Notes: generated by a model from the sequence alone, not told the origin. Counted from the stretch's first letter, positions 2,335 through 33,938 are shown. The stretch: 64,000 nucleotides of DNA from Rebecca billardiae RCC1528 (GCA_965240325.2 OZ251238.1:186001-250000), one strand, 5' to 3'. A program made the numbers and translations.

Positions 2335-2375
2335 GGTGTACCCTGTGATTTTTGCAGGAATCTGTAGTGTCACGG
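2335..2375 (+). repeat. Left terminal inverted repeat of the PrimPol element
   Basis: Imperfect inverted match to 7667-7707. Confidence 0.85.
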
Positions 2376-2595
2376 CACCCTCCCCCCCTGCCCCTAGGGG
2401 GCCCATAGGGGCGACCCCCCAGATACCCAGGCTGAGCGGCTTTCTACCCCTCTGTAGGGACATGTCCCGGAAGTCACCGGCTGCCCATAGTGTGCACGAC
2501 ACTGTTTGATTATTCCTCTGTATAGTCAGCGACGGTCCGCGCGCGCGCCGCCGCGCCGCGGCGCCGCCTAAGCTGCCGCTGGCGGCGGCCGCCCG

Positions 2596-2858
2596 CCGCG
2601 CCGCGCCAAGACCCCCCCCCCACCCGACCGCCCGACCCGACCCGACTGCCCGACTGCCAGTGCCACGCCGCGCCAAGACCCCCTCCCCACCCGACCGCCC
2701 GACCCGACCCGACCGCCCGACTGCCACGCCAGTCCGGGGCTAGTCCGGGCCAGTCCGGGCCATGGCCGCCGCGCCGCCGCCGCGCCAAGGACCCCCCCCC
2801 CCACCCGACCGCCCGACCCGACCCGACTGCCCGACTGCCAGTGCCACGCCGCGCCAAG

Positions 2859-2899
<41 letters not shown>

Positions 2900-3147
2900 A
2901 CCCGACCGCCCGACCCGACCAGTCCGGGCCATGGCCGCCGCGCCGCCGCCGCGCCAACCAAGACCCCCCCCCCCACCCGACCGCCCGACCCGACCCGACT
3001 GCCCGACTGCCAGTGCCACGCCGCGCCAAGACCCCCCCCCCCACCCGACCGCCCGACCCGACCCGACCGCCCGACTGCCACGCCAGTCCGGGGCTAGTCC
3101 GGGCCAGTCCGGGCCATGGCCGCCGCGCCGCCGCCGCGCCAAGACCC
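2596..3147 (+). repeat. Left subterminal tandem array, part 1 (alternating ~65-bp and ~110-bp units with CCGACCCGACCCGAC cores and variable poly-C)
   Basis: Repeated CCACCCGACCGCCCGACCCGACCCGAC(T/C)GCCCGACTGCCA...GCGCCAAGA(C)n and AGTCCGGGGCTAGTCCGGGCCAGTCCGGGCCATGGCC. Confidence 0.9.
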
Positions 3148-4572
3148 CACCTTGAATGACCCCAGTGGGCGGAAATGGCCATATCTCCCGGAGATTGCGT
3201 TTACTGACGTACGTCAGTAAAGTTTCGTCGGGATTTTCAGCAATTTCATTGGAGGAGGGTGCCTCACTCTATTGTCCAAACTTGCATTTTCGGGATGTGA
3301 AGCTGTAAGTGTTTCGCCTTGCGGAGTAGCGCAGCCGCCAATCCGTCCAATGGGAAGCCAGCTCGGGCTTCGCTCAATGAAAAATGATCACATCGGCTCC
3401 CGCGAGCCCCGATAGGAAATAGAGCTCGCTCCGTTCCACTTCGTCGGTATCTCGCCGTCTCGTGGTGGGCGAGGGGCGGAGCTGAGTGGTTGGGTCTGCG
3501 GCGCGGACTGCGATGCTGGGCTGCTGACGTTCTCCGCGCGGGATATCTGAGGGGCACGCGAGCTGTATGTAGGGCACGCCTTGCAAACAATCTCCCCGCT
3601 GTACGTGCAGGTCATGCTAGCGTCCTCCGCGCCAAAAAAACCTGCTTGTTCTTGCGCGAGGCCCGAGTCCGCGGCACTCGGTCGCTGCTCGCCGCAAGCT
3701 GGCACGCGTCAGCGTCTACACATTCACGATTCGGTGGTCATCGTGCGCCTGAGGACGGGGGCGATCTACTGAGTGCGCTGCTAGATGAGCAGGGCCGCGT
3801 AAGGTTAGATCACCCTGCTCCTCACGCCTTGCGCGCACCTTGGGTTGCTTCCGTCACGCTTGAGGCGCTTCACGTCGCACGGGTCGGCGTAAGCTGTGTG
3901 TGTGATGCAAGCAGACGTCTTCCAAGCCTGGCTTGTACCCGATGGGAGAGCATACTTCTATCGCCTTCAGCCACCACCTTCTCCGGCGTTCGACGCCCAC
4001 ACTACATGCGACCACAGCCATACGCAGCTCGTCGGGACTCGTCTCCGTTAGCTTATCGATGTGCAAACGCCAAGGCCTGTGACACGCAGGGAAGACTGAT
4101 TCGCCATGGCATTTGTGCACTGCGTGAAGTATTGACACCAGCGCACGTTCGCCAGGTAGATTTGCGGGAGCAGAGCGTGCTTTTCTGCAAGGATTCGCAC
4201 ACGTATCACAGAAGTTCAGCAGTCGCGGGCTCGGACTGAAGATCTCTGCACCGTCGCTTGGCCGTGAGTGACAGGAACAGGCGAGGAGCTCCCACGGTGC
4301 TGGCGCACAACATGCCGTGACAGCGGGGGGCACACACATGGCGCGTGCGCTGACACAACCGCGCGGACGACCGGGCTAGGCGCCACTGATCGGCCGCCCT
4401 CGGGCAAGGCACCGGCGGACTTCGCGGCCGGAACGCCATCGGGACAGCCGTCCCTCGTTTCGGCCGCCAGATAGTCTTTCGCCTTCTTCAAAACTCTAAA
4501 CATTGACTGGCCAAGTAACTCTGAGATTCGCAATCGTGCGGCCAAAAACGGGGCTGGGGGGCAGTCAAGGTG
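3148..4572. mobile_element. Non-autonomous CAC-terminal (CMC/CACTA- or Chapaev-like) TIR element nested in a poly-C tract of the array
   Basis: Left end CACCTTGAATGACCCCAG; right end reverse complement CACCTTGACTGCCCCCCAG. The array unit AAGACCC|...|CCCCCCCCCCCACCCGAC is rebuilt on removal. TSD probably CCC (ambiguous in the homopolymer). Lower GC; no recognisable transposase ORF. Confidence 0.75.
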
Positions 4573-5200
4573 CCCCCCCCCCCACCCGACCGCGCCCGAC
4601 CCGACCCGACTGCCCGACTGCCAGTGCCACGCCGCGCCAAGACCCCCCCCTCCCACCCGACCGCCCGACCCGACCCGACTGCCCGACTGCCACGCCAGTC
4701 CGGGGCTAGTCCGGGCCAGTCCGGGCCATGGCCGCCGCGCCGCCCGGCCGCGCCAAGACCCCCCCCCCCCCGACCCGACCGCCCGACCCGACCCGACTGC
4801 CCGACTGCCAGTGCCACGCCGCGCCAAGACCCCCCCCCCCCCCACCCGACCGCCCGACCCGACCCGACCGCCCGACTGCCACGCCAGTCCGGGGCTAGTC
4901 CGGGCCAGTCCGGGCCATGGCCGCCGCGCCGCCGCCGCGCCAAGACCCCGCGGCCCCCCCCCACGGCCCACCCGACCGCCCGACCCGACCCGACTGCCCG
5001 ACTGCCAGTGCCGCGCCGCGCCAAGACCCCCCCCCCCACCCGACCGCCCGACCCGACCCGACTGCCCGACTGCCATGCCAGTCCGGGGCTGCCACGCCAG
5101 TCCGGGGCTAGTCCGGACCAGTCCGGGCCATGGCCGCCGCGCCGCGCCGCGCCAAGACCCCCCCCCCCACCCGGTCGCCCGACCCGACCCGACTGCCCGA
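4573..5200 (+). repeat. Left subterminal tandem array, part 2
   Basis: Same units as 2596-3147. Confidence 0.9.
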
Positions 5201-5239
5201 CTCGGGGCCACGCCCCGGCCGCCCGGCCGGGGCACAACG

Positions 5240-5670
5240 CGCGCGCGCCGCGCTGGGTGGACAAATGGGGGCGTGGCGCGCGCGCGCGCGCCGTCGCGCG
5301 GCCGACGACCTCGGTCGCCAGCGCGCTCGCCGCGCGACCGCGGCGCGCGTGGCCGGGTGCGCACGCCGCGGGCGGCGCAGCGCGAGGACGGACGGGTCGC
5401 CGCGCCGCGCAGCGCGCGCGCCGCGCCGGGTGGACAAATGGGGGCGTGGCGCGCGCGCGCGCGCCGTGCGGCCGACGACCTCGGTCGCCAGCGCGCTCGC
5501 CGCGCGACCGCGGCGCGCGTGGCCGGACGCGCACGCTGCGGGCGGCGCCGAGCGCGAGGAGACGGGTCGATGCGCCGCGCACGAGCGGCCCGCCCGGCTG
5601 AGCCAACCGTGACTGCCCGCCGCGCCGTGCGCGCGCCTTGTCCGGGTGGACAAATGGGGGCGTGGGGGCG
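5240..5670 (+). repeat. Second internal repeat family (~170-210 bp period, GGGTGGACAAATGGGGGCGTGG core x3)
   Basis: Core at ~5255, ~5428 and ~5644. The first two cores are followed by the identical GCGGCCGACGACCTCGGTCGCCAGCGCGCTCGCCGCGCGACCGCGGCGCGCGTGGCCGG. Confidence 0.8.
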
Positions 5671-5927
5671 CCGGCGCCGCATCATCGTGGGCACGTAGGC
5701 GTTCGACCGCTCAGCCGCGCAGCTTCTTCCAACCAACTCCGATATGTATAATTCTGAATATATAATAATGCTGACGTCGTCTGCCCGTCCGCACTGACCA
5801 CTGTGTGCTGAGGATGCATTCTGACCGATACGCGACTGTTGCAGTTATTGATTGCCGCGTCGTCGTCCTAACTCTAAACTCAGACTAACATTAACAAGTG
5901 GCGCGGCCGAGCAGCTAGCTGCAGCAG

Positions 5928-7351
5928 CTAAGTTCCGTCGAAGGCGTCGGAGCAGGGCGCCGCAAACGTCTGGCCAGGGGCGGGCAGCGCCGCGGCGGTG
6001 CCGCAGCCGGCCTCACGGGCGGGCTGCTGCGCGGGGCCGCAGCACCCGCGCGCGCACGCGCCGCTGGGCAGATGGCGGTACGGTAGCCCCCGGAGGCGAA
6101 CGGCGCGCGCGCCGCGCCGGCCGCCAGCAGCGGCGACGCACACGGGATCACCGCAGCACAGGTCCATGCCGTCGGCGTTGGCGACGTAGTAGACGGTCCT
6201 GCTCGCATGCTCGCCGCGCTTGCGCTCGCACCACCTGCTCGTGGTCGAGCACGTCGCGATGCGGCCGTGCGGCGTGCTCCCTGCGTACACCCGCTGGACG
6301 CGCGGCCAGTGCCCGGTGGCGCCTGCGCCGGCCGCGTGCGCGTCGAGCTGCGCGTTGAGCCACGCGACGAGCGCGCCGCGCCCCGCGGCGCGCGCGCAGA
6401 GCGGCGCCTGCGGGTGGGGCGGCGGGCACGGCGGCGCACGCCGCGCCGCCGCCGGCGCGCCGGGGCGGGCGCTGCCCGCCGCGGCGCTCGCGGCGAACTC
6501 GAAGCGCTCGGTGCGCAGCCGCGTCAGCGCGAGCCAACGCGCCGGCTCGCAGCGCTGCCGCAGGGCGTGCCCGGCCGGCAGCGCCGAGAGCCAGGCGCAG
6601 CGCACGACGCCCGAGCCGTCGGCAGCGACGACGGCGGCGGGCAGGTAGGGCGGGCCGCCGTCCGCCTTGGCCGTGAACGGCAAGCGCAAGCCGGAGCGGT
6701 AGATCGACCCATCGACCTCGGCCTTGGCAAAGAGGGCGCGCACAGGGCTCGCCTGCAGCCGCACGTCCAGCTCCCGCGCGACGCGCTGCGCCTCCGAGGA
6801 GCTCAGGACCGCACTGTCGCCCCAGGTGGCGTGCAGGCCCGCGCGGAACAGGCCGGCGTCGTCCGCGGCGACCCCGGGGCGCGAGGGCGTCGCCGCGCGC
6901 GCCGAGACGTGCACGGCGTGGCCGCGCGCGGGACGGGGCACGCCGTGGAACGCAGCGTCTGCCGCGTCGTAGAGGTCGACGAGCAGCGCGGCGAGGGCGT
7001 CGTACGAGGGCATGCGGGAGAAGCGCAGATCCACGTCGACGCCGAACCGCGCGCGCGCGCCGAACGTCTCGACGACCATGGGCGCGCGCGCGCCAAGCAG
7101 CGCGTACGACGACGCGACGAGCGCGTCCAGCCGCGGCAGAGAGGCGCTCGGCACGTGCAGCCGACCGCCCACCCTGTGGCCGTCGGCGTCGCGGAGGAAC
7201 ACAATCTCGTGGGTGCACGGCTCGTCGCCGCCGGCGCGCGCGCGATTTGCCCCGGCCGGTGGTAGCACGGGCGGCCGGGCGTGGCAGTCCGAGGCAGTCG
7301 GGTGGTCGGGTCGGGTCGGGGGGGGGTCTTGGCGCGGCGCCCGGCGGCCAT
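5928..7351 (-). CDS. Intronless archaeo-eukaryotic primase (AEP) of the NCLDV/herpesvirus-PrimPol clade with C-terminal UL52-type zinc finger; ATG (7351) is one base out of frame across a C9 run
   Basis: N-terminal TH...GGRLHVP...VVE; motif I RFGVDVD; motif II GLHATW; motif III VDGSIYRSGLRLPFTAK...PYLP; zinc finger SRWCERKRGEHASRTVYY...CCGDPVC (cf. PrimPol RWCENIGRAHKSNN...CHDPVC). Continuous ORF 5928-7268. Confidence 0.85.
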
Positions 7352-7490
7352 GGCCCGGGCTGGTCCGGACTAGCCCCGGACCGGCGTGGCAGTCGGGCGG
7401 TCGGGTCGGGTCGGGCGGTCGGGTGGGGGGGGGGGGTCTTGGCGCGGCGTGGCACTGGCAGTCGGGTAGTCGGGTCGGGTCGGGCGGTCA
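7278..7490 (-). repeat. Right subterminal array: inverted copy of the left array units
   Basis: GTCGGGTCGGGTCGGG(G)nTCTTGGCGCGGCG and CCATGGCCCGG...GGACTAGCCCCGGAC are reverse complements of the left units. Confidence 0.9.
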
Positions 7491-7604
7491 GGTGGCCCGC
7501 CAAGCACAGCGGCCGTGGTCGGGTGCCGCCCGCCAGCACGGCGGCCGTGGTCGGGTGGGCCCGACTGCACCGCTCAACAGCTAGGGATGACGAGGAATCG
7601 GGCG

Positions 7605-7626
7605 TGTCACGTCGGCCAATCAGAGC
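7605..7626 (-). promoter_or_regulatory. Putative promoter motifs upstream of the primase gene (CCAAT box plus ACGT/CRE-like core)
   Basis: TGTCACGTCGGCCAATCAGAG lies between the right TIR and the primase ATG. Confidence 0.35.
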
Positions 7627-7666
7627 GCGCGCGCGTGCGCGCCCACTTACAGCTTCCCGCACTCTT

Positions 7667-7707
7667 CCTGGAAACTCCAGATTCCTGCAAAAATGGCAGG
7701 ATAGACC
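7667..7707 (-). repeat. Right terminal inverted repeat of the PrimPol element
   Basis: Imperfect inverted match to 2335-2375. Confidence 0.85.
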
Positions 7708-7749
7708 CTCGCCGGCATCAGTCAGCGCATCAAGTATATCGACATCAGT

Positions 7750-8318: not shown

Positions 8319-9336
8319 CGCAGTCTCAGGGCTCTCACTCTGACACGCTCACTGACTCACTCTCAGCAGAAATGCAGCAGATCCGAGATCATCGATACTA
8401 CTGCTTAGTATTCCTATCGTCTGATCACGTGCGGACGCGAATGCAGCCACTTCATTAAATAATAATAATGTCATTATGCGGCGGATAAGTGCGCCAGCCG
8501 TACTAGCGCGCGCGCTATGGCCCAATTGACGACTACGATGATCATGATGGGCTGCACAGCTGACTCAGGGTCCGACCTGGGTGACCCACATGCCCACAGT
8601 ACAGGGGGGTCCAGATGGTGGCGCCCACTTTGGTCGGTGGCTGGCCATATTGGTAGTGCGGCGTGCACACCGTCCGGCCTCTGGATGGGCATTGAGCGGT
8701 GGCAAGGTCGCTATATCGCGTGACGTGGTCCGAGAGAAGGTTGTTGCCAGCCCTGATCACCTTGCTAGCCATGTCGGCCGATGCTCGCCCCGCTGTTGAC
8801 AGGCGCGCACACGCCAAACGTATTTGCACGGCAGGCGTCTGTCGGCAGCCGTGTCGGACGGCGGTCGCACGACTTACCGCGCAGCCAACCTTGCTCGTCA
8901 GATCCACGGCTTATAGGGTCAGATGGACCATCGCCAGGCATGCACCGTCGCAATGCATGCCCCAGAGGCCCAGAGGGCAGTATGGCCGTCAGAACGGTGA
9001 TCCTGGCCGCTACCTGCCCATCCTTCCCATGCTGACGCAACCCCACCGGCGCGCCGGTCGTACGGGGGCGTGGACGTGGACGTGAGAGTGGTCGAAAAGT
9101 CGGAAGGAAAGCTGTCACTCACGCACACGCGCTCGTACGGCGACGCCGACCGGCGAGTGCAACGCCCCCCTATCCCAGACGTTGCACTCCCGCCTTGGAT
9201 CGCGATGGGACGGGTACAGTATTCACGCCCGCCATGGCTTCAAGCCACGGCGGGCATGAAATACTGTAGGCTTCCCATTCCGAATTACTGGGAAGCTTCA
9301 TCTTGGATCCCCCACGGTAATAGTGGAGCTGACACG

Positions 9337-9666
9337 ATGGCGGACGATGACGGCCATCATCGGGCGGCCGAGCATGGACCGAGTGTGCCCGCAATGGTGA
9401 TGATCGAGAGGGAGATTCTCGCGATGGTTCGGCGGCGAGGCCTGTCTAAGAGCTGCTGACCATCCGAAATCGCGCGCAAGTGCTATCCAGCGGACGTTTG
9501 GCGGACGAAGATGGCTGATGTCCGAGCGGTCGCAAAGCAGCTCGCGCTTGAACGCAAGATAGACATCTTGCAGCGTGGTGTCCCTGTGGCATGCTTGGAG
9601 CACATCCGTGGGCCTATTCGTCTGCGATTGGCGCACACGCCTGGCACTGGTGATGATGCGGCTTAG
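9337..9666 (+). CDS. DUF3253-family small protein with in-frame TGA (9457-9459) at the conserved Cys: candidate selenoprotein
   Basis: Read-through gives MADDD...IEREILAMVRRRGLSKSC*PSEIARKCYPADVWRTKMADVRAVAKQLALERKIDILQRGVPVACLEHIRGPIRLRL...-TAG. This matches the DUF3253 pattern (IL.LL..RG..KTICPSE.AR...WR.LM..VR..A..L...G.I.I.Q.G..V.....RGPIRLRL) on both sides of the TGA. Confidence 0.8.
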
Positions 9667-9712
9667 ATCCCTGGTCCCTCTCCATCTAAGCACGCGGACC
9701 AACCATCCAGCC
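9641..9712 (+). ncRNA. Candidate SECIS element (CC-type apical motif) overlapping the stop codon
   Basis: AUGAU (9653-57) / GGAC (9696-99) kink-turn quartet. An 11-bp helix GCG-GCTTAGAT / ATCTAAGC-A-CGC. CC at 9669-70, exactly where canonical SECIS has AA. Weak lower helix TGGT/ACCA. Confidence 0.6.
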
Positions 9713-10550
9713 AAACGACCCCAGCACGTCGGCCTGTAACACGACGACTACACACACGACCCTTGCTACACGACCCTTGCTACACGGCGACTAGACGACT
9801 GACATCATCACGCGTGCGTACATGCCCACCGCAGTCGGGGCCGGGCGCTGCAGGAAGGCCGGGCGGACGGCGACGCGCCGGCCAGACGGCGATCCGCGGT
9901 GACTATATCGCGCTGGCTGTCTGGCGATCCGCGGTGACTATATCGCGCTACTCGAGGCCCGTGGGCGTGGCATCGTCAGTTCGTCTGTCGTCATCGCGTC
10001 GTCATTACTCATTAGTCATTAGCGGCCGGCGGCGCCGCGTCGTCCTATGCGCCAGTCCGGGGGCGCGCCGCTGGCCGGGCCGGGGTCCGAGCGCGGCGCG
10101 CCTCGGCCGGCTTCATCACTAGCCCTCAAGGCGGCCGTGGTTATCCATGCATGCTGCCATGCAGGCGCGGACGTTATTATTCGTCGCACTGCTACGTCGT
10201 ACGAGTTCGTAGTCCTAGTATACTGCTTAAGTGCTTATATATTATTATAATGTCCCCACGCAGTAGTCGATCATTAGCACTACCACCGGCACCGGCCGGG
10301 GCGGCATCCGACTCCGCATCGTCGTCAGCATTGTACTCCGGCCGAGTATCTGCGTACGGCGCATACCTGAATTAATATAATTATATATATATAATAATAA
10401 TAATAAGTCGATATAGATATAGCTAGTAGGTCGGCTGGCGCCGCCCTGCTAGCTCACGAATTCTGCTCTGAACTCATCCGGACTCGGACGAGGCTGGGCA
10501 GGCTGGCCGCCGAAGGCGGGAAGGAGGGCCGGGGCCGAGTGGATATGAGC

Positions 10551-12521
10551 TCAGATCGTCGACATCTGCGTCTGGCCGGGCACGGACAGCCCGGAGGAGC
10601 TGGCTTCGTGCTGGGCCTTGCTGTTGCTCTTCGCCCACTTGCTCGGGGAGCGCATCGCGGAGAGAATCCCGGGGGACTTGGCCGGCGAGTCGCTGACCCC
10701 ACGCGTGCCGAGCGAGGCCCGCCGTGGCACCGGGTGCTTGGAACTGTCCAGCACGTGCTCCCACCGCTCGATGTTGTGGTCGACGAGCGACAGCAGCGGC
10801 TGTGCCTCGCGCGCCATGTCGGCGAGCATCGCGTACACCGGGCGGGCACTCTCCCCTGCGCGAGACGGCGCGGCGGCGGCGGCGAGATGGCGCGCGGGGG
10901 TGCGTTGTGTGTCAGAGCGAGTGGGTGCGCGCGCGCGCGCGCCCTGCGCGCCCGCGCAGGCGGTGCCACGCGCTCACTCCCAAGGGTGATCTGGCACTTG
11001 ATGGCGTTGCGGTCCGCGTTGCGGTCGCAGAATGCCGAGACTTCCGCGCCGGGCAGCTTGCGCTCGTAGTCGCCCTGGCGGTGGTGCTCCTTCATCATCT
11101 TGCACGCCCAACGCTCGTTCACAGCCGGCGGCCGCGAGGCGGTCGCGAGCACGGCGGCCTTCAGGATCACCTGGCTGACGACGAGCGAGTGGCCGGCGAG
11201 CACGAGGTTCTCCACAGTCGCGATCGGTGCGTCGGGTTCGGAGGTCGCGATAGACATCGTGGGCTTCTTGCCCTGCGCGCGAGCGGCGTACGCGCGCGCA
11301 GCACCAGCGAGGGTGCGTCGCAACGGGCTGTCAGCCAGCTGGCCTGGCCGCGCGGCGCTGACATGCGTGCGCGCGGGCGCATGCGCGCACCCCAACGGCA
11401 GGCGCAGCCGCCGCCCTCGTGCCCCCGTCCGCGGCCTGGCCGACTGCCGCGCGCGCATTCTTGAGGACGTTTTCGTGCTGCGCCGGATCGGTCGCAACAA
11501 TGAGCTCGGTGATGCGCGCGCGGATCGAGTTGGCCACCTCGAGGCCGAGGCGCGTGAGCACGTTCGTGTCGGGCGACTCGAGCAGCTTGTTCGCCACGGA
11601 GGCTTGGTGCTTCTTGAGGGCGCCGTCAGCGCCGTGCTGGTCCACGATCGCGTGCTCGACCGCAACGACGTACTCGTTGGAGAAGCCGGGGTGGTCGACG
11701 TCGTGCACGAACGCGGCGAGCAGGATGGCAAGCCGATCGTGTGGCGGCAGGTGGTCCTTCACAGACGGCTGCTCGGTGATCATGAACGCGGCCTGCAGCG
11801 CGTCGACTGACTTCTGGAAGGACGAGAAAGGGTGCGGGTACATGAGCTCGCGCGTGCGCGAGATCAGCGCGATGAGCCGGCCGTCGTGCGCGTTCACGCC
11901 GTTCAGGATGCCCGAGCGGTCGAACATGCGGTGCACGACGACGCACAGCGTCTCGATCGTGAAAGCATGCGGGTAGAAGTGCCAGCGCGTGTAGACCCGA
12001 TCGTCTTTGACCGCCTTGCCCTCAAAGTCGTCGCCGCGGTAGTGGAACGCGTCGTCCTTGATGTGCGAGTAGCCGATCGCGAGCTGCGTGTCATTGGGCA
12101 CGTCGAGATCAACCTGCAGGTCTGTGACTAGCGTGCCGACAGAGCCTCGGTGGAAGAGGTTGGTGACCGACGAGGCGCGGCGCTTGTGCGCGCCGGGCGT
12201 CTGGGCAGGCGGCGTCGACATGGCCGGCGTGACCGGCGGCGATGGCACGTTTGTGCCATCACCACCACCGCCACCGCCGCGTGAGCCGCCGCCCGAGGTA
12301 TCGCCGGGCAGCGTGAGATCGCCCAGGCCGCCTGGCTTGCGCGCGCTGCTCTTGCGGGGGAGCCCCGAGCTGTTGCCCTGCCCATCCGAGCTGGGCCGGC
12401 CGGGCTGCGAGGATGCGCGCCCCTGCTCCGCCGCGTCGCCCGCGTCGTCTGCCTCCGGGTCGGGCGCGACCGTGGCGTTGGATTTGCCCGCGCGAGCGCG
12501 AGTGGGTGCAAAGCTGACCAT
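10551..12521 (-). CDS. Class I cyclic-nucleotide phosphodiesterase-like protein, probably catalytically impaired; exons 12521-11391, 11272-10978, 10855-10551
   Basis: HDVDHPGFSNEY, LIVATD, W...KEHHRQGDYER, conserved Gln (KCQ), NIERW. GT-AG introns keep the frame. YHNxxH is replaced by FSSFQK and KxAD by KAAV. Confidence 0.85.
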
Positions 12522-12965
12522 GGTGGGACTTCGGGACCTCTGCCGCCGGCCAGCTTAAGCCAGTCGCGCCGAGCTGTGAGCTACGGCGCACTCCGTCGCG
12601 TGCGAGCGCGAAGCGACGGGCAGCTGCTTGATCTGCTGCGTAGGCCCCGCTCCCACCTGACACGGCGCGACACCGCGCGCGCCTGGTGCGGCCGGTCGTC
12701 AGCACACCCTCGTCAAGCGGCGGGGCTTTCGACGACCCCACAAGCTTGGGGAACAGACACGCCTGGCCCTCGGCGGCGGCTGCACCCCTTTAATGAGAGT
12801 CCGCAATACTCCGGCATACACGGTTCGTATGACGAATCCGTAACGACTATTTATAGCCTGATTGCGCCACCTCTATCAGTGCCGGGTAGCTCTGGTAGTA
12901 TTTCCGCTGCATCAGCGCCTGCAGACTGCACGCGTATGGCGGGGGTATTTTGTACGTCGCTACAT

Positions 12966-13664
12966 GTGGCTGAGTCAGTTTAAATTCCCCTTCGGCGAAG
13001 GGAAACTTTTTCCGCGCAAAGCCCGGTCAAAGAAAGTCGAAACCCGCTGACTCACCCGCAAGCTCAGAGTGGGCCGCCCGTGCGGTTGCCAGCATGCCTG
13101 CGGTCGGCCGTCCTGGGCGAGCCGCAGTGATCGGAGCCAACTGGATGGGCTCGGTCACAGCCGAGTCAGCAGGGAGGTGATCGTAGCGAGCAGCACCGCC
13201 GACATGCGGCATGTTCAAGGACGAGGTGCTGAGTCATGCAGCAGCTCGGCTCGCGGCACGGAGCGGCTCACGTCGGATGGCGGCGTGGAGTGATGCCGGC
13301 CTCGACAAGCGTCAGACACGCTGCCTACAGGCCTGACAGGATGCACTGAGCAAGCTGCGCCAGTGGGTGCGGCAGCGACATGCGTCTCTAGCTGCGCCGT
13401 GACCTCTTGACGCGCTGGCCGCCGCCCGGCGCCCAGCGCGCGCGCTGCCGCGCGCCGCGCGGCCTCAGGCTGGAGCCGTCTCGCGATCCAATCTGACTCA
13501 CACTTCTCAGAAATTCAAAAAAATGGACTTTCTCGCCCAATTTTGGTCCTTCGTCGACGTTCTTGGGCTCTACGTGCTCCTCTCGACGAGGCGCTTCGGG
13601 TAGGCTAGCTAACTCGGATCGCGACCCCTGCACTAAAAAGGGGATTTTAAACTGACTCAGCCAC
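12966..13664. mobile_element. Non-autonomous TIR element (~700 bp), 4-bp TSD ACAT
   Basis: GTGGCTGAGTCAGTTTAAATTCCCCTT vs reverse complement of right end GTGGCTGAGTCAGTTTAAAATCCCCTT. ACAT at 12962-65 and 13665-68. Confidence 0.8.
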
Positions 13665-24297: not shown

Positions 24298-24615
24298 CGA
24301 TAAGTGGGGTTATTGGTACAATAACTGATTGTCTAAGAGGACGACAAGAACGCCGGGCGCCAGCGCCGCTCATCAGCCACGACATCGCCCTCTACCGACC
24401 ATCGCCTCAAAGGGCGCTGCTCCCGGACAAACAGTCTGTCCGGGTTGTTCTTTCTGCCGCCCAGGAGATCGGTTTCCGGCGCCGGCCTCTGCAGCCTGCT
24501 TCGCCAGGCGCGGCGTGCGAGATGGCTCCAGCCAAGCTCGTCCTGCGTCGCCGGCGGCGGCGGCTCGCACGCGGGTGGCGCGTCGCGTGCACCGACCAAC
24601 ATCTTTCGGCTAAGG

Positions 24616-24616
<1 letters not shown>

Positions 24617-24695
<79 letters not shown>
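24617..24695. repeat. (TA)n microsatellite
   Basis: Perfect TA run of ~79 bp. Confidence 0.95.
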
Positions 24696-25221
<526 letters not shown>

Positions 25222-25250
25222 TACGTCGATCATCGTCGTCATCGTCGTCG

Positions 25251-27048
25251 TCATCCGGCTGCGGGCGGATCGGCATCATCAGCCAGCGAGCGGCCGGCGT
25301 GCGCACCGATGCACAGCCCTGCCATCAGGCGCGCCGCCTGCGCGGCGGCCTGCTGCTCGGCGTAGCCGTGCGCTCGCGCCGCCGCGCTGGCGGCGGCGTC
25401 GGCGTGCGGCGCCTCGGCCTCCTCGGCGGCGTGCGCGTGGTGCGTGTCCGCGTGCGCGCGTGCCGCCCAGCCCTCCACGTCCAACAGCAGCCCGGCGCTG
25501 CTGCCGCTGGAGGAGGGGGCGCGCGCACCGCTGAGCGCGGCGCGCAGGAGCGCGCGCGGGCACTCGACCACGGCGTGCGCGCTGCCGTCCGCGCCGAAGA
25601 GGAGCGCGCCCTCCTCCTCCTCCTCCTCCCCCTCCTCGCCCTCCGCCTCCGCCTCGCTGCCCTCCGCGTCCGCGTCCGCCGCGCCGTCTGCGCCGCCACC
25701 GTGCGCGCGCCAGACTGAGCTGAGAGGCAGCGCGACAGGCAGAGGCGCGGGCAGCGGCGCGAGCGCGCCCGCCGCGCGCGCGGCGCGGTGGCCGAGCGGG
25801 TGCAGGTGCAGCAGCGTGGGCAGGAGCACCGCCTCCTCCCCGTCGTCGCCCCGCGCGGCGGCGCGCGCCAGCGCGGCGTGCACGAGCGCGCCGCCCGCGC
25901 GCGCGCACAGCCAGCCGCCGCCTCCGCCGCCGCCGCCGCCGCCGCAGCCGCCGGCTCGCGCGCTGCCGAGGGGCAGCAGCGCGCGCACGGGCGCGGAGGG
26001 ACACGCGCAGGGCGGCGCGCGCGGCGGCTCCTCGGCCGCACCGCCGCCGCCCGGCGGCGCGGCGGCGGGCTGGGCCGCGCCCGCGCCCGCCGCCGGCTCC
26101 TCCGCGGCCGAGGGCGCGGGCAGCCACACCGGGCGCGCGCACGGCGCCAGCCTTAGCGCCGGCTCGGCCGCGCCGCCGGCCGCCGCCGCCGCGCCCGCCG
26201 CCTCGAGCGCGCGCGCCACGCGGCCGTCAAGCGCCCACGCGCACAGGAAGGCGTGGGTGGCCGTGGGCGCGCGCTCGGCCGCGCCGCCGGCCGCGCCGCC
26301 GCCCGCCGCGGGCGGCGCGCGCGGCAGGCTGCAGCTCGCAGCCGCCAGCAGCACACCGCGCCGCGCGCTCAGCGCCGTGAGCGCGCAGCGCGCGGGGCCG
26401 CGCGCGCCCGCCTCGACGGCCGCCTGCCACGCGGCCGCAGCCCAGCCGGGCGGCGGCTCGGCGGGCGGCGCGGCGTCGGCGCGCGCGCACAGCGCCAGCT
26501 CGACGCGCGGCGGCGCAGCTGCCCCGCCCGCCGCGCCGCCCTCCTCCGCCCCGGCGGGCCGCGCGGCGCGCGGTGCGTACACGCACACGGCCGCGCCCGC
26601 GGCGGCGGCGACCGCGCCCGCGCCGAGGGGCTCGAGCGCGGGGCACGGCGCCAAGGTGGGGCCTGTCGCGCCGCCGGCCGCGGCGTCGGCGGCGTGCGCC
26701 GCCGCGGGGGGCAGCGGCACGCTCGCGAGCAGCCGCAGCCCGCCAGCCTCCTCCTCCTCCTCCGCCGCCGCCGCCGCCTCCGCCCGCTGCGGCCGCCCCG
26801 CGCCGCCGCCGCCGCCGTGCGCGCGCACGCCCCAGCAGCTGAGCACGGGCGCGCCGCCGCGCGCTGGCACGCTCGCGCAGTAGCAGCCGAGCTGCGCGGC
26901 CGCCCAGCTCGGCGCGCGCCCCTCGCCGAGCGCGCCGCCGCCCGCGTGCGCCGGCGTCGCCGCCGCGAGCGCGCTGATGGCGTGCGGCGCGCCTCCGAGC
27001 ATCAGCGGCCGCCCCAGCAGCGGCCGCGCGCGCGACACACCGCGCCGC

Positions 27049-31207: not shown

Positions 31208-32456
31208 ATGCCGGCGCCGTCGCTGACCCTCGTCGATCGCACCGTCGAGTCGCTCGGCGTCGACCCCGCCCTCGCGAGCGCGCTCGGCGCCGCGCTGAGC
31301 ACGAGCGTGCTCGCGGCCAACTCTGCGCTCGTGTTCGGCGCGGGGCTCGGCGCCAAGTTCCCGCTCTCGGTGCTGTTCATGCAGTCGATCGTGATGCTCG
31401 CGTGCTACGCGATCACCGCCCCCTTCAACCGCGGCGCGCCCGCCAGCCTCTCGCTCAAGATGTTCCGCGCCGCCGCGCCGCCGGCCGGTCTGTGGGTGCT
31501 GAGCGCGTGGACGGGCGCGCGCGTGCTCGCCGCGTACGGGATCACGTCGTACACGGCGACGCACGCGGCCGCGGCGATGCTCACCGTGCTCGGCGAGGGC
31601 CTCCTCTTCCGCGAGGCCGTCGCGCGCCTCGTGCTCTGCTCCACGCTCGCGCTCTTCCTCGGCGGCGTGCTCGCGGCCTCGGCCGAGCGCTCGGCGCTCG
31701 ACACCGGTGCGCGCGCGCGCGTTCGCGCGCTCGCGCGCGCGCGCGCTCGCCGTGCCGCGCGTCGCCGACGCCGCCCGCCCGTCCCCTCGCGCGCGCGCAC
31801 ACACACGCTCCCCGCCCCCGCGCCCGCCAGGCGAGTCGATGCCGCTCTCCGCGGCCGTGCACGCGCTCTCACTGAGCGGCTTCCTGCTGTGCTGCCGCGC
31901 GACGTTCCCGCCGGGCGCGCTAGCCAAGCAGCGCGCGATCCACATCACGCTGCTCGGCGCGCTGATGCTCGGGGTCGCGTGCGCCGTGGCCGAGTCGTCC
32001 GAGCTCGTCTCGCAGCCCGCGAGCGCCGCCGAGCACATCGCGCTGCCGCTGCTGAGCGGCGGCGTGCTGCGCGCGTGCGCCACTGTCGCGCTGCTCTGGT
32101 GTCTTTCACACGCGAGCGCTGGCACGTGCGGCCTCGCCGTGGCGTACGCCGCGCTGCCCGCGATCCCGGCGGCGGGGCTCGCGATCCGGCTGCTCGCGCC
32201 CGCGCTCGTGCACGCCGCGGGCGACGACGCCAGCCCCTCCGGCCTCGCCTCGCTCGGGCTGGCCGGCAGCCCACGGAGTGCCCTCAGCGCCGCAGGCGTG
32301 GGCCTGATGCTGCTGGCAGGCTGCTGCTTCGGCTACAGCAAGGAGCGCCAACGCCGCCTCGAGTTCCTGCTGCGCGGCGCGGACGACGCGGCGGAGGAGA
32401 CGGCGGGGCTCGTCGCGGACGAGGAGACCACCGGGCTCACGGCCGGTGCGGACTGA
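31208..32456 (+). CDS. Nucleotide-sugar/TPT-family (SLC35D/GONST-like) transporter; intron 31707-31830
   Basis: ~9-10 hydrophobic helices; FPLSVLFMQS, LTVLGEGLLF; GT-AG intron restores the frame. Confidence 0.75.
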
Positions 32457-32478
32457 GCCGCCGCCTTGCCCTCGGCCG

Positions 32479-32619
32479 CGTGCGTGCGCGTGCGTGCGCG
32501 TGCGTGTGCGTGCGTGCGCGTGCGTGCGCGTGCGTGCGCGTGCGTGCGCGTGCGTGCGCGTGCGTGCGCGTGCGTGCGCGTGCGTGCGCGTGCGTGCGCG
32601 TGCGTGCGCGTGCGTGCGC
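32479..32619. repeat. (GCGTGCGTGC)n 10-bp tandem repeat of alternating purine-pyrimidine
   Basis: About 14 units directly after the transporter stop codon. Confidence 0.9.
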
Positions 32620-33938
32620 GGCAGCGGCCGAGCTCGGAGGGCGGCCGCGCTGGCTGCACTCCGCGCGCGTGGTGTGTGTGCGTGTGCGTGTGCGTGTGCG
32701 TGTGCGTGTGCAGCCGCACCGCACCGACGCCGCAGGCGCAGCAGCCGGCTGCGCTGTGCGCACGCCTCGAGGGCGCGCGCGCTGCCGCGCCGCGCCGCGG
32801 GCGGGGAGAGGCCGCGGAGCGGTGGAGCGGTGGAGCCGTGGAGCCGTGTCCTCCTCACCGTCCTCACGCGCGCGCGCGCCAGAGGAGGAGGACACGGCGG
32901 CTGTGGCCCACTGGCTCCGCCGATCCGCGCGGCGCCCGGTCTCGCCGTGCGCACCCGGCCGCCGGCTGGCTCGAATCCGGTGCCTCCGCCTGTACCGCCC
33001 GGCCAACCGCCATGATTGGGCCGTCATGCGAGCCGCCGCCAGGCGCCGGCCCCTCGCCCCGTCTGCCGGCCGAGCAACCGCAAAGTCAGAGTGAGTGACT
33101 CAGAGTCGCATTGCCGCCACGGCCCGCCACTGACAGGCCTGCCCGAGACTGGCCTCAGCACGCCAGCAGTGATCTGCAGCCATGACGCCCATCACGGCTG
33201 CCACGCTGCAGCTAGGAGCAGTGCCGGGCTGCTCGGGCATTTCAGGCCGGAATTCCTCAGCACCGGACAGCCTCAGTTCGCCTGGCGGCTTGGGGAGCAA
33301 ACCCTCAGTATCGGGCGATGGCGACCAATCTGGCACGCACCACGCGCGCTGCGCAGGCTGATGCGCGGCCCTCGCGGCGCGCACGCTCGCGCGCGCTGGG
33401 CGGATGGCACCGGGAGACATGGAGGATCATCCCCGTCCCTTCTCGCCCCGCACTCTCGCCTCTCTCCGCCGCGCAGGACCTGTTGCATTACGCCCGGCCC
33501 GGCCCGGTCTGCGGCCGCGCGCTCTCGAGGCTGCGCGCGTGGCCCATCCAGGGCGAGTTTCGAGGCGCTCTCGAGCTTGGCACGTCGGGGCATATACATG
33601 GGCAACTGCCGCAAGCGCTCGCGCCCGTGCGCGTGGCGAGTCGCCGGCGCTGGGCGATCTACTGAGGGTCGTGCAGTGTCGCAACTCAGCCGTCGACAGC
33701 TGCCATCCGCGTAGGGGTGCGTGCGCGCCCACTTACGGTCACGTCGGCGCGTCGAGGTGGGCAGATTGCGGCCTATAGATGCTGCTACGATCATAGTAGG
33801 CGGCGTCGATCGCGAGCGTGCGTGCGGTAGCCTGAGCTGAGGCGCCGGTCGGTGCGCCGCGGCCGCCCGGGCGGCGCCGGGCACGACGACCGGAGTCAGA
33901 GGCGGCCGCAGACCGGGCGAGCGTGGTCGTGCGTTCGC

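Follow-up and report, generated by a model that had tools for sequence, protein, structure and literature searches.

A terminal-inverted-repeat transposon with a giant-virus-type primase-polymerase gene in a GC-rich eukaryotic genome

We asked why a primase-polymerase gene of the giant-virus type lies inside a short transposon, and whether it is cargo of that transposon or the element's own gene. The locus is part of a 64,000-nt stretch of Rebecca billardiae RCC1528 DNA (the window, to which all coordinates refer), and the insertion occupies positions 2335-7707 (5,373 nt) in this very GC-rich eukaryotic genome. The initial annotation had described an element with terminal inverted repeats (TIRs) and a target site duplication (TSD), and both were recovered by computation as a combination unique in the window. 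The left TIR (2335-2375, plus strand), which has a GG terminus, matches the reverse complement of the imperfect right TIR (7667-7707, minus strand) at 33 of 41 positions (26/30), and the 8-bp sequence CTCGCCGG abuts the two ends in exact copies (8/8; 2327-2334 and 7708-7715). The ends can also be read with GGG termini and a 6-bp TCGCCG direct repeat because bases 2334 and 7708 are complementary; the 8-bp TSD is the best parse. Very GC-rich, repeat-rich DNA yields many spurious repeats, and one could suppose that the TIRs and TSD are coincidental and that an ordinary host gene simply sits between minisatellites. This supposition is already disfavoured and we find it hardly credible: identity of an 8-mer at fixed positions has a chance of p ~4.5e-5 at the local composition, no inverted pair of 41-mers in the first 12 kb other than the TIRs reaches 33 matches once the arrays are set aside, the pattern of the 23-nt TIR core, which includes an AT-rich run, matches only the two element ends in 64 kb (0 matches expected from 100 shuffles), and the tandem arrays are inverted and restricted to the element interval.

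Between the TIRs and the arrays lies unique subterminal sequence, on the left at 2376-2594, where local alignment to the right subterminal part did not rise above shuffles, and on the right at 7558-7666. The left array (plus strand) is in two parts: 2595-3147, C-rich on the plus strand (GC skew -0.42) with a composite unit of ~189 nt and a 44-nt poly-C run, and 4573-5202, with 3.2 units of 189 nt (GC skew -0.37). The right array (7270-7500, minus strand, GC skew +0.34) is an inverted copy of ~1.2 of these units. The arrays are thus unequal in length (~1.2 kb on the left versus 0.23 kb on the right), both face inward, and they are strand-asymmetric, the G-rich strand running 5' to 3' toward each element end. 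The 14-mers of the right array are confined to 2598-3148 and 4573-5194 in one orientation and to 7270-7500 in the inverted one, so that the inverted subterminal arrays reported earlier are indeed specific to the element. A 32-nt tandem repeat (7495-7557, 1.9 copies) borders the right array. The inner junction of the left array (5203-5250) resembles 7232-7269 in inverted orientation (93% over 28 nt for 5223-5250 against 7259-7232), and a second tandem repeat (5239-5690, plus strand) has ~2.5 copies of a 170-nt unit with an identical 21-nt motif at 5256, 5429 and 5645. The poly-C run of one left array unit is interrupted by a nested insertion (3148-4572; 1,425 nt) with 16-nt inverted ends and no coding-like ORF, which arrived later than the element itself. 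Without it the element measures 3,948 nt, in agreement with the size of ~3.9 kb proposed beforehand.

What protein does the element's gene specify? The ORF (5928-7268, minus strand; 446 codons as listed) has an archaeo-eukaryotic primase (AEP) domain at ~6624-7214 and a zinc finger at ~6129-6251; a lower-GC spacer (5700-5927, minus strand, 52% GC) lies directly 3' of its stop codon and is presumably the 3' flank of the gene. The protein itself matched no Pfam family (E <= 1 for the whole protein, E <= 10 for each domain taken separately), and its link to a Pfam family is transitive because only its relatives match: AEP_C962R (PF23162, cut-off 23 bits) is found by P0004 with 27.8 bits and by P0007 with 88.7 bits, and in 10 of the 12 members of our alignment; Herpes_UL52 is matched by one of the 12, an NCLDV member (8.6e-5). 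In BLASTP, residues 34-382 aligned with the NCLDV protein P0015 (E = 1e-14), and hhalign joined the GC-rich clade to the NCLDV clade with a probability of 98.7% (E = 3e-16), at an identity of 23-27% between the window protein and the viral clade. In the 12-sequence alignment, motifs I (D78, D80), II (H146) and III (D186 to R195) fall in invariant or near-invariant columns, D78, D80, G144, H146, D186, Y190, G193, L194 and R195 being invariant with the NCLDV clade included. C-terminal to the AEP core, conserved columns form a UL52-like CHC2 zinc finger, C347-x6-H354-x17-C372-x4-C377, which may bind metal. The intact motifs I-III and the UL52-type zinc finger of a single AEP gene, as the initial annotation had it, therefore stand.

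The predicted structure points the same way. Its core has a pLDDT of 70-84 (mean 59, moderate overall), and the best Foldseek match was the Prim/Pol domain of AsfvPrimPol (E = 5e-6, TM ~0.57-0.61 on the target), followed by HSV UL52; no cellular PrimPol was among the 50 PDB matches listed. In a library of viral structures the matches were C962R-like AEP proteins of medusavirus, pandoravirus and Feldmannia virus. With support that is indirect, from relatives, profiles and predicted fold, we consider the ORF to represent a real AEP with a UL52-like zinc finger, and by alignment it shares homology along its entire length with a ~355-aa protein of algal-virus-like NCLDV contigs. The earlier placement in the NCLDV/herpes type and not with cellular PrimPol is borne out by the AEP_C962R and Herpes_UL52 matches of the relatives, by the ASFV/UL52 fold and by the relatives on NCLDV contigs.

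The state of the gene is relevant to its role. It is collinear with its relatives in a single frame, with 0 internal stops or frameshifts compared to them. The ORF has no in-frame ATG or other canonical start upstream of the AEP conserved core, and its first ~12 codons are the inverted array junction of the element and not AEP-homologous sequence. Because a canonical start is missing upstream of the conserved N-terminal strands, translation of this copy probably no longer yields a full-length enzyme. At 78% GC, the ORF has a host-like codon composition (GC at positions 1/2/3 of 0.77/0.64/0.92 versus 0.87/0.71/0.95 in a host-like ORF), which may be read as a sign of long residence in the host.

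Relatives of this AEP are rare, only seven being found among 1.84 billion (1.84e9) representative proteins. GC-rich contigs are the source of six of the seven, and truncations or frameshifts affect most of them; within the GC-rich group, P0002 alone runs the full length in a single frame, the others being truncated or spread over 2-3 frames. The closest relatives outside this clade are on NCLDV contigs, where the gene adjoins major capsid genes, with Capsid_NCLDV, PCNA and a capping methyltransferase in the neighbourhood. P0004 and P0003 were assembled from Logan runs ERR14847151 and ERR14847149, which belong to one accession series, and the former run also has a contig 100% identical to window positions 9163-12990; most likely, both proteins are from the same genome as the window. 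Neither TIRs nor arrays occur within their short contigs (1.3-2.6 kb), and TIRs may lie farther out.

We searched the element for the means of its own movement. In keeping with what had been noted before, no Pfam family of transposases or integrases was found in any element ORF, nor any other family besides the AEP lineage, and there was no helicase, protein-primed polymerase B, Cas1, capsid or ATPase. The element is non-autonomous at best because it encodes no transposase. Further copies, which the initial annotation had wanted sought genome-wide, were looked for in the 64-kb window and in viral and metagenome contigs: neither TIRs nor arrays recur in the window, and the TIR pattern had no match in viral contigs and one chance match in metagenome contigs. 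In the sampled ORFs around the element only host-type domains (PDEase_I, an RSE1/DDB1 propeller) or none were recognized and no NCLDV hallmark gene, which, together with the host-like codons of the AEP, differs from what defines an endogenous giant-virus region (GEVE).

The explanation that we prefer, with a probability of roughly 0.55, is that a single insertion has placed a non-autonomous class II TIR transposon of the cut-and-paste type, with the AEP as its cargo, in a eukaryotic nuclear genome. A transposase acting in trans and making 8-bp staggered cuts would have moved the element, and the arrays would be binding or structural parts of its ends. The AEP gene would have been captured almost whole between the arrays, and would belong to an AEP family of giant-virus ancestry which, in this lineage, is older, present in few copies and for the most part decayed. 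Since this copy is probably not translated in full, the AEP would be dispensable for movement, and the most likely picture is that of a non-autonomous element, now dead, with the AEP as its passenger. Taken at the sequence level, the array-derived first ~12 codons, the missing in-frame ATG, the bare P0003 and P0004 contigs and the decay of most relatives may all be read in favour of cargo over a core gene. Against this explanation, the family's mobility is only inferred, as no second TIR or array copy is in the window; Pack-type capture usually takes gene fragments, and a near-complete gene without introns is less typical of it; and an 11-nt motif is common to the right TIR, the internal repeats and the flank of a distant AEP relative.

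That motif, TGSAMAAATGG, plays a part in an alternative which we regard as unlikely, namely that an internal deletion has shortened the element, that it belongs to a transposon or virus-like family not yet described, and that the AEP is its own gene, priming or copying the element, with the inverted G-rich arrays and the repeated motif as recognition or priming sites and the integration enzyme lost from this copy. The AEP is the sole gene and its catalytic and zinc-finger residues are all in place, the polarity of the arrays recalls the terminal repeats of linear replicons, and the AEP family is patchy and decaying in the manner of mobile elements. The motif is found in the right TIR and upstream of a truncated AEP on the contigs L006, L007 and L012 (the flank of one distant relative), and the internal 170-nt repeat has three copies of it, which hints at a connection between the AEP gene and the repeats, and the AEP fragment of L012 lies between inverted 55-nt repeats. 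However, the motif was defined post hoc from the data themselves, and the longer similarity of the 170-nt unit to the L012 flank was not above that of dinucleotide shuffles (z = 1.4; reached by 33 of 300). The absence of integrase, transposase, helicase and polymerase B, the lack of a canonical start codon, the P0003 and P0004 contigs without TIR or arrays and the lack of a copy in the viral or metagenome contigs searched also count against it. In its boldest form, the idea joins the inverted G-rich arrays and the repeats beside the AEP gene to the gene itself as a minimal eukaryotic replicon that is mobile and self-priming, integrated by a lost or trans-acting enzyme, with the decayed AEPs as its fossils; we think this quite improbable. 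The self-priming or self-synthesising family considered initially thus found no positive evidence, while the other initial proposal, a non-autonomous transposon that captured and kept a viral primase, gives the best fit as to non-autonomy and capture; for 'kept', in the sense of selection on the cargo, no support emerged.

The giant-virus ancestry could also be explained without gene capture in the host. The AEP family may consist of relics of old NCLDV integrations, and the transposon may have inserted around such a relic or arrived inside a viral genome that it had colonised, so that the element would mark a virus-to-host transfer. In NCLDV contigs, the nearest relatives from outside the GC-rich clade occupy conserved positions as stand-alone AEP genes, all fold and Pfam links lead to the NCLDV/herpes clade, and the AEP copies are diverged and decayed. 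The lack of any further NCLDV hallmark gene in the sampled ORFs and the host-like codons argue against it, as does the low identity to the viral clade, because of which any transfer must be ancient; we hold this scenario to be possible, though on the improbable side.

How does the element compare to known systems? The AEP is like the NCLDV AEPs (PF23162; the ~355-aa P0007-P0018 of giant-virus contigs; the N-terminal Prim/Pol domain of ASFV C962R as the solved relative) in fold, and like their stand-alone forms in domain order (core, then C-x6-H-x17-C-x4-C), identical motif residues and full-length collinearity. It differs from them in its distant sequence, its lack of an own Pfam match, its GC content and codons, a long disordered linker and tail, and its position in a transposon of a eukaryotic chromosome instead of a viral genome; it is stand-alone, intronless and without the helicase domain that C962R and D5 have. 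Pack-MULE-type and other deletion-derivative class II elements similarly have TIRs and a TSD, no transposase and foreign coding sequence without an own start, whereas their cargo is host-gene fragments and not a near-complete intronless viral-type gene. Foldback-like elements (FB, and Galileo of Drosophila) have long inverted ends made up of subrepeats in tandem. The inverted tandem arrays near the ends and the short unique middle are shared with them, but here the arrays are very unequal and stand 109-219 nt of unrelated sequence away from the 41-nt TIRs, and the terminal bases and TSD length identify neither the FB nor the P group. An 8-bp TSD fits hAT, Merlin, MULE, P, Zisupton and Novosib elements, and GG termini do not discriminate among them; as the element has no transposase, the Merlin/IS1595 or MULE assignment suggested initially would draw on GG termini and TSD length only. 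Polintons/Mavericks, polinton-like viruses and casposons also hold a replication protein inside a TIR-bounded, TSD-flanked element, and polinton-like viruses reportedly contain AEP domains as primase-helicase fusions. In contrast to these elements of 15-40 kb (15-20 kb and a 6-bp TSD for Polintons/Mavericks and other self-synthesising transposons), the present one is 3.9 kb without the nested insert, and it lacks protein-primed PolB, retroviral-type integrase, Cas1, capsid, ATPase and helicase; the Polinton-like parse offered earlier survives as an alternative GGG/6-bp reading of the ends, with no support from proteins.

Giant-virus genes enter algal and protist genomes, and transposons colonise giant viruses. 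A primase-polymerase of giant-virus type is an unusual transposon cargo, and in the literature searched we came upon no account of a short TIR transposon with a complete NCLDV-type primase-polymerase as its sole cargo. If the AEP were the element's own gene, the eukaryotic mobile elements that replicate themselves would gain a new kind. We favour the ordinary reading as cargo, which, if true, would provide a concrete case of a transposon that carries a replication gene of viral origin from place to place within its host's genome and would define a small, previously unannotated AEP clade.

We found that the element at 2335-7707 is bracketed by terminal inverted repeats (TIRs; left 2335-2375, right 7667-7707) that agree at 33 of 41 positions. 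A 23-nt core of the TIR occurs at both element ends and nowhere else in the window (0 matches in 100 shuffles), and the element is flanked by an 8-bp target-site duplication (TSD; left copy CTCGCCGG at 2327-2334, right copy at 7708-7715) with a chance probability of ~4.5e-5. Inside the left TIR, unique subterminal sequence (2376-2594) is followed by a C-rich tandem array with a composite unit of ~189 nt, which consists of two halves (2595-3147 and 4573-5202). Between them sits a nested insertion of 1,425 nt (3148-4572), bounded by 16-nt inverted ends of its own and located in a poly-C run. The inner junction of this array (~50 nt, after 5202), a second tandem repeat with a 170-nt unit (5239-5690) and a spacer of 52% GC (5700-5927) lead to the ORF of an archaeo-eukaryotic primase-polymerase (AEP; 5928-7268, minus strand). 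On the right side there are ~1.2 units of the left array in inverted copy (7270-7500), a 32-nt repeat (7495-7557) and unique subterminal sequence (7558-7666). Inverted similarity also links the inner junctions of the arrays (5223-5250 versus 7259-7232). The array halves flanking the nested insert and the host flanks were compared as separate pieces and never joined; a likeness between the two unique subterminal regions was not above shuffles and was discarded. The element is 5,373 nt long, or 3,948 nt after subtraction of the nested insert. The TIRs, the TSD and the nested insertion show that it is a class II transposon insertion. A transposase is absent and the element is therefore non-autonomous.

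Several further features of the element were recorded. The arrays are strand-asymmetric (GC skew -0.42 at 2595-3147, -0.37 at 4573-5202 and +0.34 at 7270-7500), with the G-run-rich strand running 5' to 3' toward each element end, and a 44-nt poly-C run lies at 2860-2903. The nested element has CAC...GTG termini and 60% GC; it contained no ORF with coding-like periodicity and no Pfam match, and no second copy was present in the window. As its insertion site is a poly-C run of the array unit, the length of its TSD is unreadable. The host flanks 2306-2334 and 7708-7736 are partly inverted-complementary, so that inverted pairing runs 29 nt past each TIR, which may be due to chance or to a preference for palindromic targets.

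The surrounding window is nuclear DNA of an extremely GC-rich eukaryote, with a GC content of 60-88% in 2-kb windows. It encodes an RSE1/DDB1-type propeller ORF and a 3',5'-cyclic nucleotide phosphodiesterase domain (10454-12521, minus strand) whose parts are read in different frames by two overlapping ORFs, as an intron within a host gene would produce. The stretches 24583-25253 and 32437-32656 comprise two long (TA)n microsatellites, ~400 nt apart and beside coding-like DNA of 80-88% GC, and an array of ~17 copies of a 10-nt unit; GCG/GCC triplet runs are pervasive from 26 to 62 kb. An Rfam search had no matches.

The protein of the AEP ORF had no match in Pfam, PHROGs or PDB sequences, including when its two domains were scanned apart against Pfam, and a word-indexed protein search, in which low-complexity words dominated the matches, gave no result. 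A collection of 15 billion proteins likewise contained neither this protein nor those of ten further ORFs from the element. When 1.84 billion representative proteins were scanned exhaustively with HMMER, only seven relatives emerged, six of them on short GC-rich (57-73%) contigs. The seventh is P0007; like the ~355-aa proteins of a tight clade, it is encoded in contigs of giant viruses (NCLDV) that also encode Capsid_NCLDV, PCNA, a capping methyltransferase and phycodnavirus-type DUF families. P0007 and the GC-rich relative P0004 matched Pfam AEP_C962R above the curated cut-off, and in a 12-sequence AEP alignment that includes the NCLDV clade, 10 members matched AEP_C962R, 9 matched PPL4 and 1 matched Herpes_UL52. 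Residues 34-382 of the window protein aligned to the NCLDV protein P0015 (E = 1e-14), and a profile of the GC-rich clade aligned to that of the NCLDV clade over 281 columns (probability 98.7%, E = 3e-16). The AEP motifs (D78, D80; H146; D186...R195) are among the invariant columns, as is the zinc-finger pattern C-x6-H-x17-C-x4-C. Of the PDB structures, an AlphaFold model of moderate quality (mean pLDDT 59, core 70-84) matched the Prim/Pol domain of ASFV PrimPol best, followed by the herpes UL52 primase; cellular PrimPol was not among the 50 PDB matches listed. Against a viral structure library, the model matched C962R-like AEP proteins of several giant viruses. Thus the initial label of a giant-virus-type primase-polymerase with a UL52-type finger stands on transitive sequence evidence and on the fold.

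The gene order before the ~355-aa stand-alone AEP is constant across the giant-virus contigs, with a NUDIX gene, then an ORF of ~75-78 aa and then the AEP (for example L002 9153-11077 and L010 7224-9068; also L003, L004, L005 and L011), and major capsid protein genes lie within a few kb. The synteny is conserved, and the gene is unnamed in the sources used.

The AEP ORF is free of stops and frameshifts over its 446 codons when compared with P0002, a full-length relative. Its GC content at codon positions 1, 2 and 3 (0.77, 0.64 and 0.92) resembles that of host ORFs, which argues for a long residence of the gene in the host genome. The open frame itself is weak evidence of selection, because the DNA is so GC-rich that other frames are also open: two further frames across the same stretch stay open for 350-500 codons. 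The sole defect is that a canonical in-frame start codon is absent upstream of the conserved N-terminal strands. Since the inner array junctions are inverted-similar, the opening ~12 codons of the listed ORF belong to the repeat structure of the element, and AEP homology starts a few codons after them.

Most of the related AEP copies are frameshifted. One locus (L001) carries a full-length AEP in a single frame, one locus found in three samples (L006, L007, L012) only the C-terminal half, L008 the AEP domain only, and in L013, L014 and L015 the AEP is read in two or three frames. With protein identities of only 29-46%, synonymous sites among copies are saturated. Neither IMG/VR nor 185,579 prokaryotic species genomes yielded relatives of the GC-rich clade in protein-guided locus searches. 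P0004 (on L008; ~29% identical to the window protein) came from run ERR14847151, and P0003 (on L013; 46-59% identical) from run ERR14847149 of the same accession series. Window positions 9163-12990 are matched at 100% identity by a Logan contig (L016) of run ERR14847151, so this run sequenced the organism of the window or an identical strain; the reads of both runs come from that organism or from a strain that does not differ from it over 3.8 kb. Given this match and the shared accession series, P0004 and P0003 are most likely paralogues in the window's own genome, which points to three or more diverged AEP loci in a single genome. The TIR and array sequence were looked for in the contigs of both proteins and none was seen.

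Two of the loci have features of their own. P0002, the only intact full-length relative, lies on near-equal contigs of 1,822-1,825 nt with the same gene coordinates in three samples (L001 and two further assemblies), and its contig may represent a transcript or a unit bounded by repeats. In L012, the contig of a distant relative, copies of a ~50-nt unit (468-605 and 1410-1468) lie on both sides of the AEP fragment, which is truncated at its 5' end: two upstream and, immediately past the stop codon, one in inverted orientation (55 nt, 75% complementary). A fourth copy is at 1785-1830.

The TIR pattern found no genuine second copy of the element in metagenome contigs; its single match (L009) was discarded as a chance match in AT-rich bacterial intergenic DNA. 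In viral contigs there were zero matches to the TIR, the array unit or the motif of the 170-nt repeat. An 11-nt motif, TGSAMAAATGG, has exactly four occurrences in the window, all within the element: three in the 170-nt repeat (5258, 5431, 5647) and one in the right TIR (7686). Outside the window, it is found upstream of the truncated AEP copy of P0001/P0020 (L006 333-343, L007 67-77, L012 487-497).

Is the AEP the element's own gene, as possible for a self-priming transposon family? The strand-asymmetric arrays, with a G-rich strand pointing to each end, are a weak hint of this, as is the 11-nt motif common to the right TIR, the internal repeat and one distant AEP locus. However, this motif was defined post hoc, from data already seen, and the longer likeness between the 170-nt repeat and the AEP flank of L006/L012 (blastn E = 6.7e-5) did not rise above dinucleotide shuffles and was discarded as non-coding homology. 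On the sequence evidence, the AEP is instead best read as cargo, because the gene, lacking a start codon of its own, starts at the margin of the repeat structure, because its family is older and mostly decayed, and because the relatives attributed to the window's genome are not flanked by these ends. Of the two initial proposals, that of a non-autonomous element carrying a captured viral-type primase fits best, the primase itself being probable cargo.
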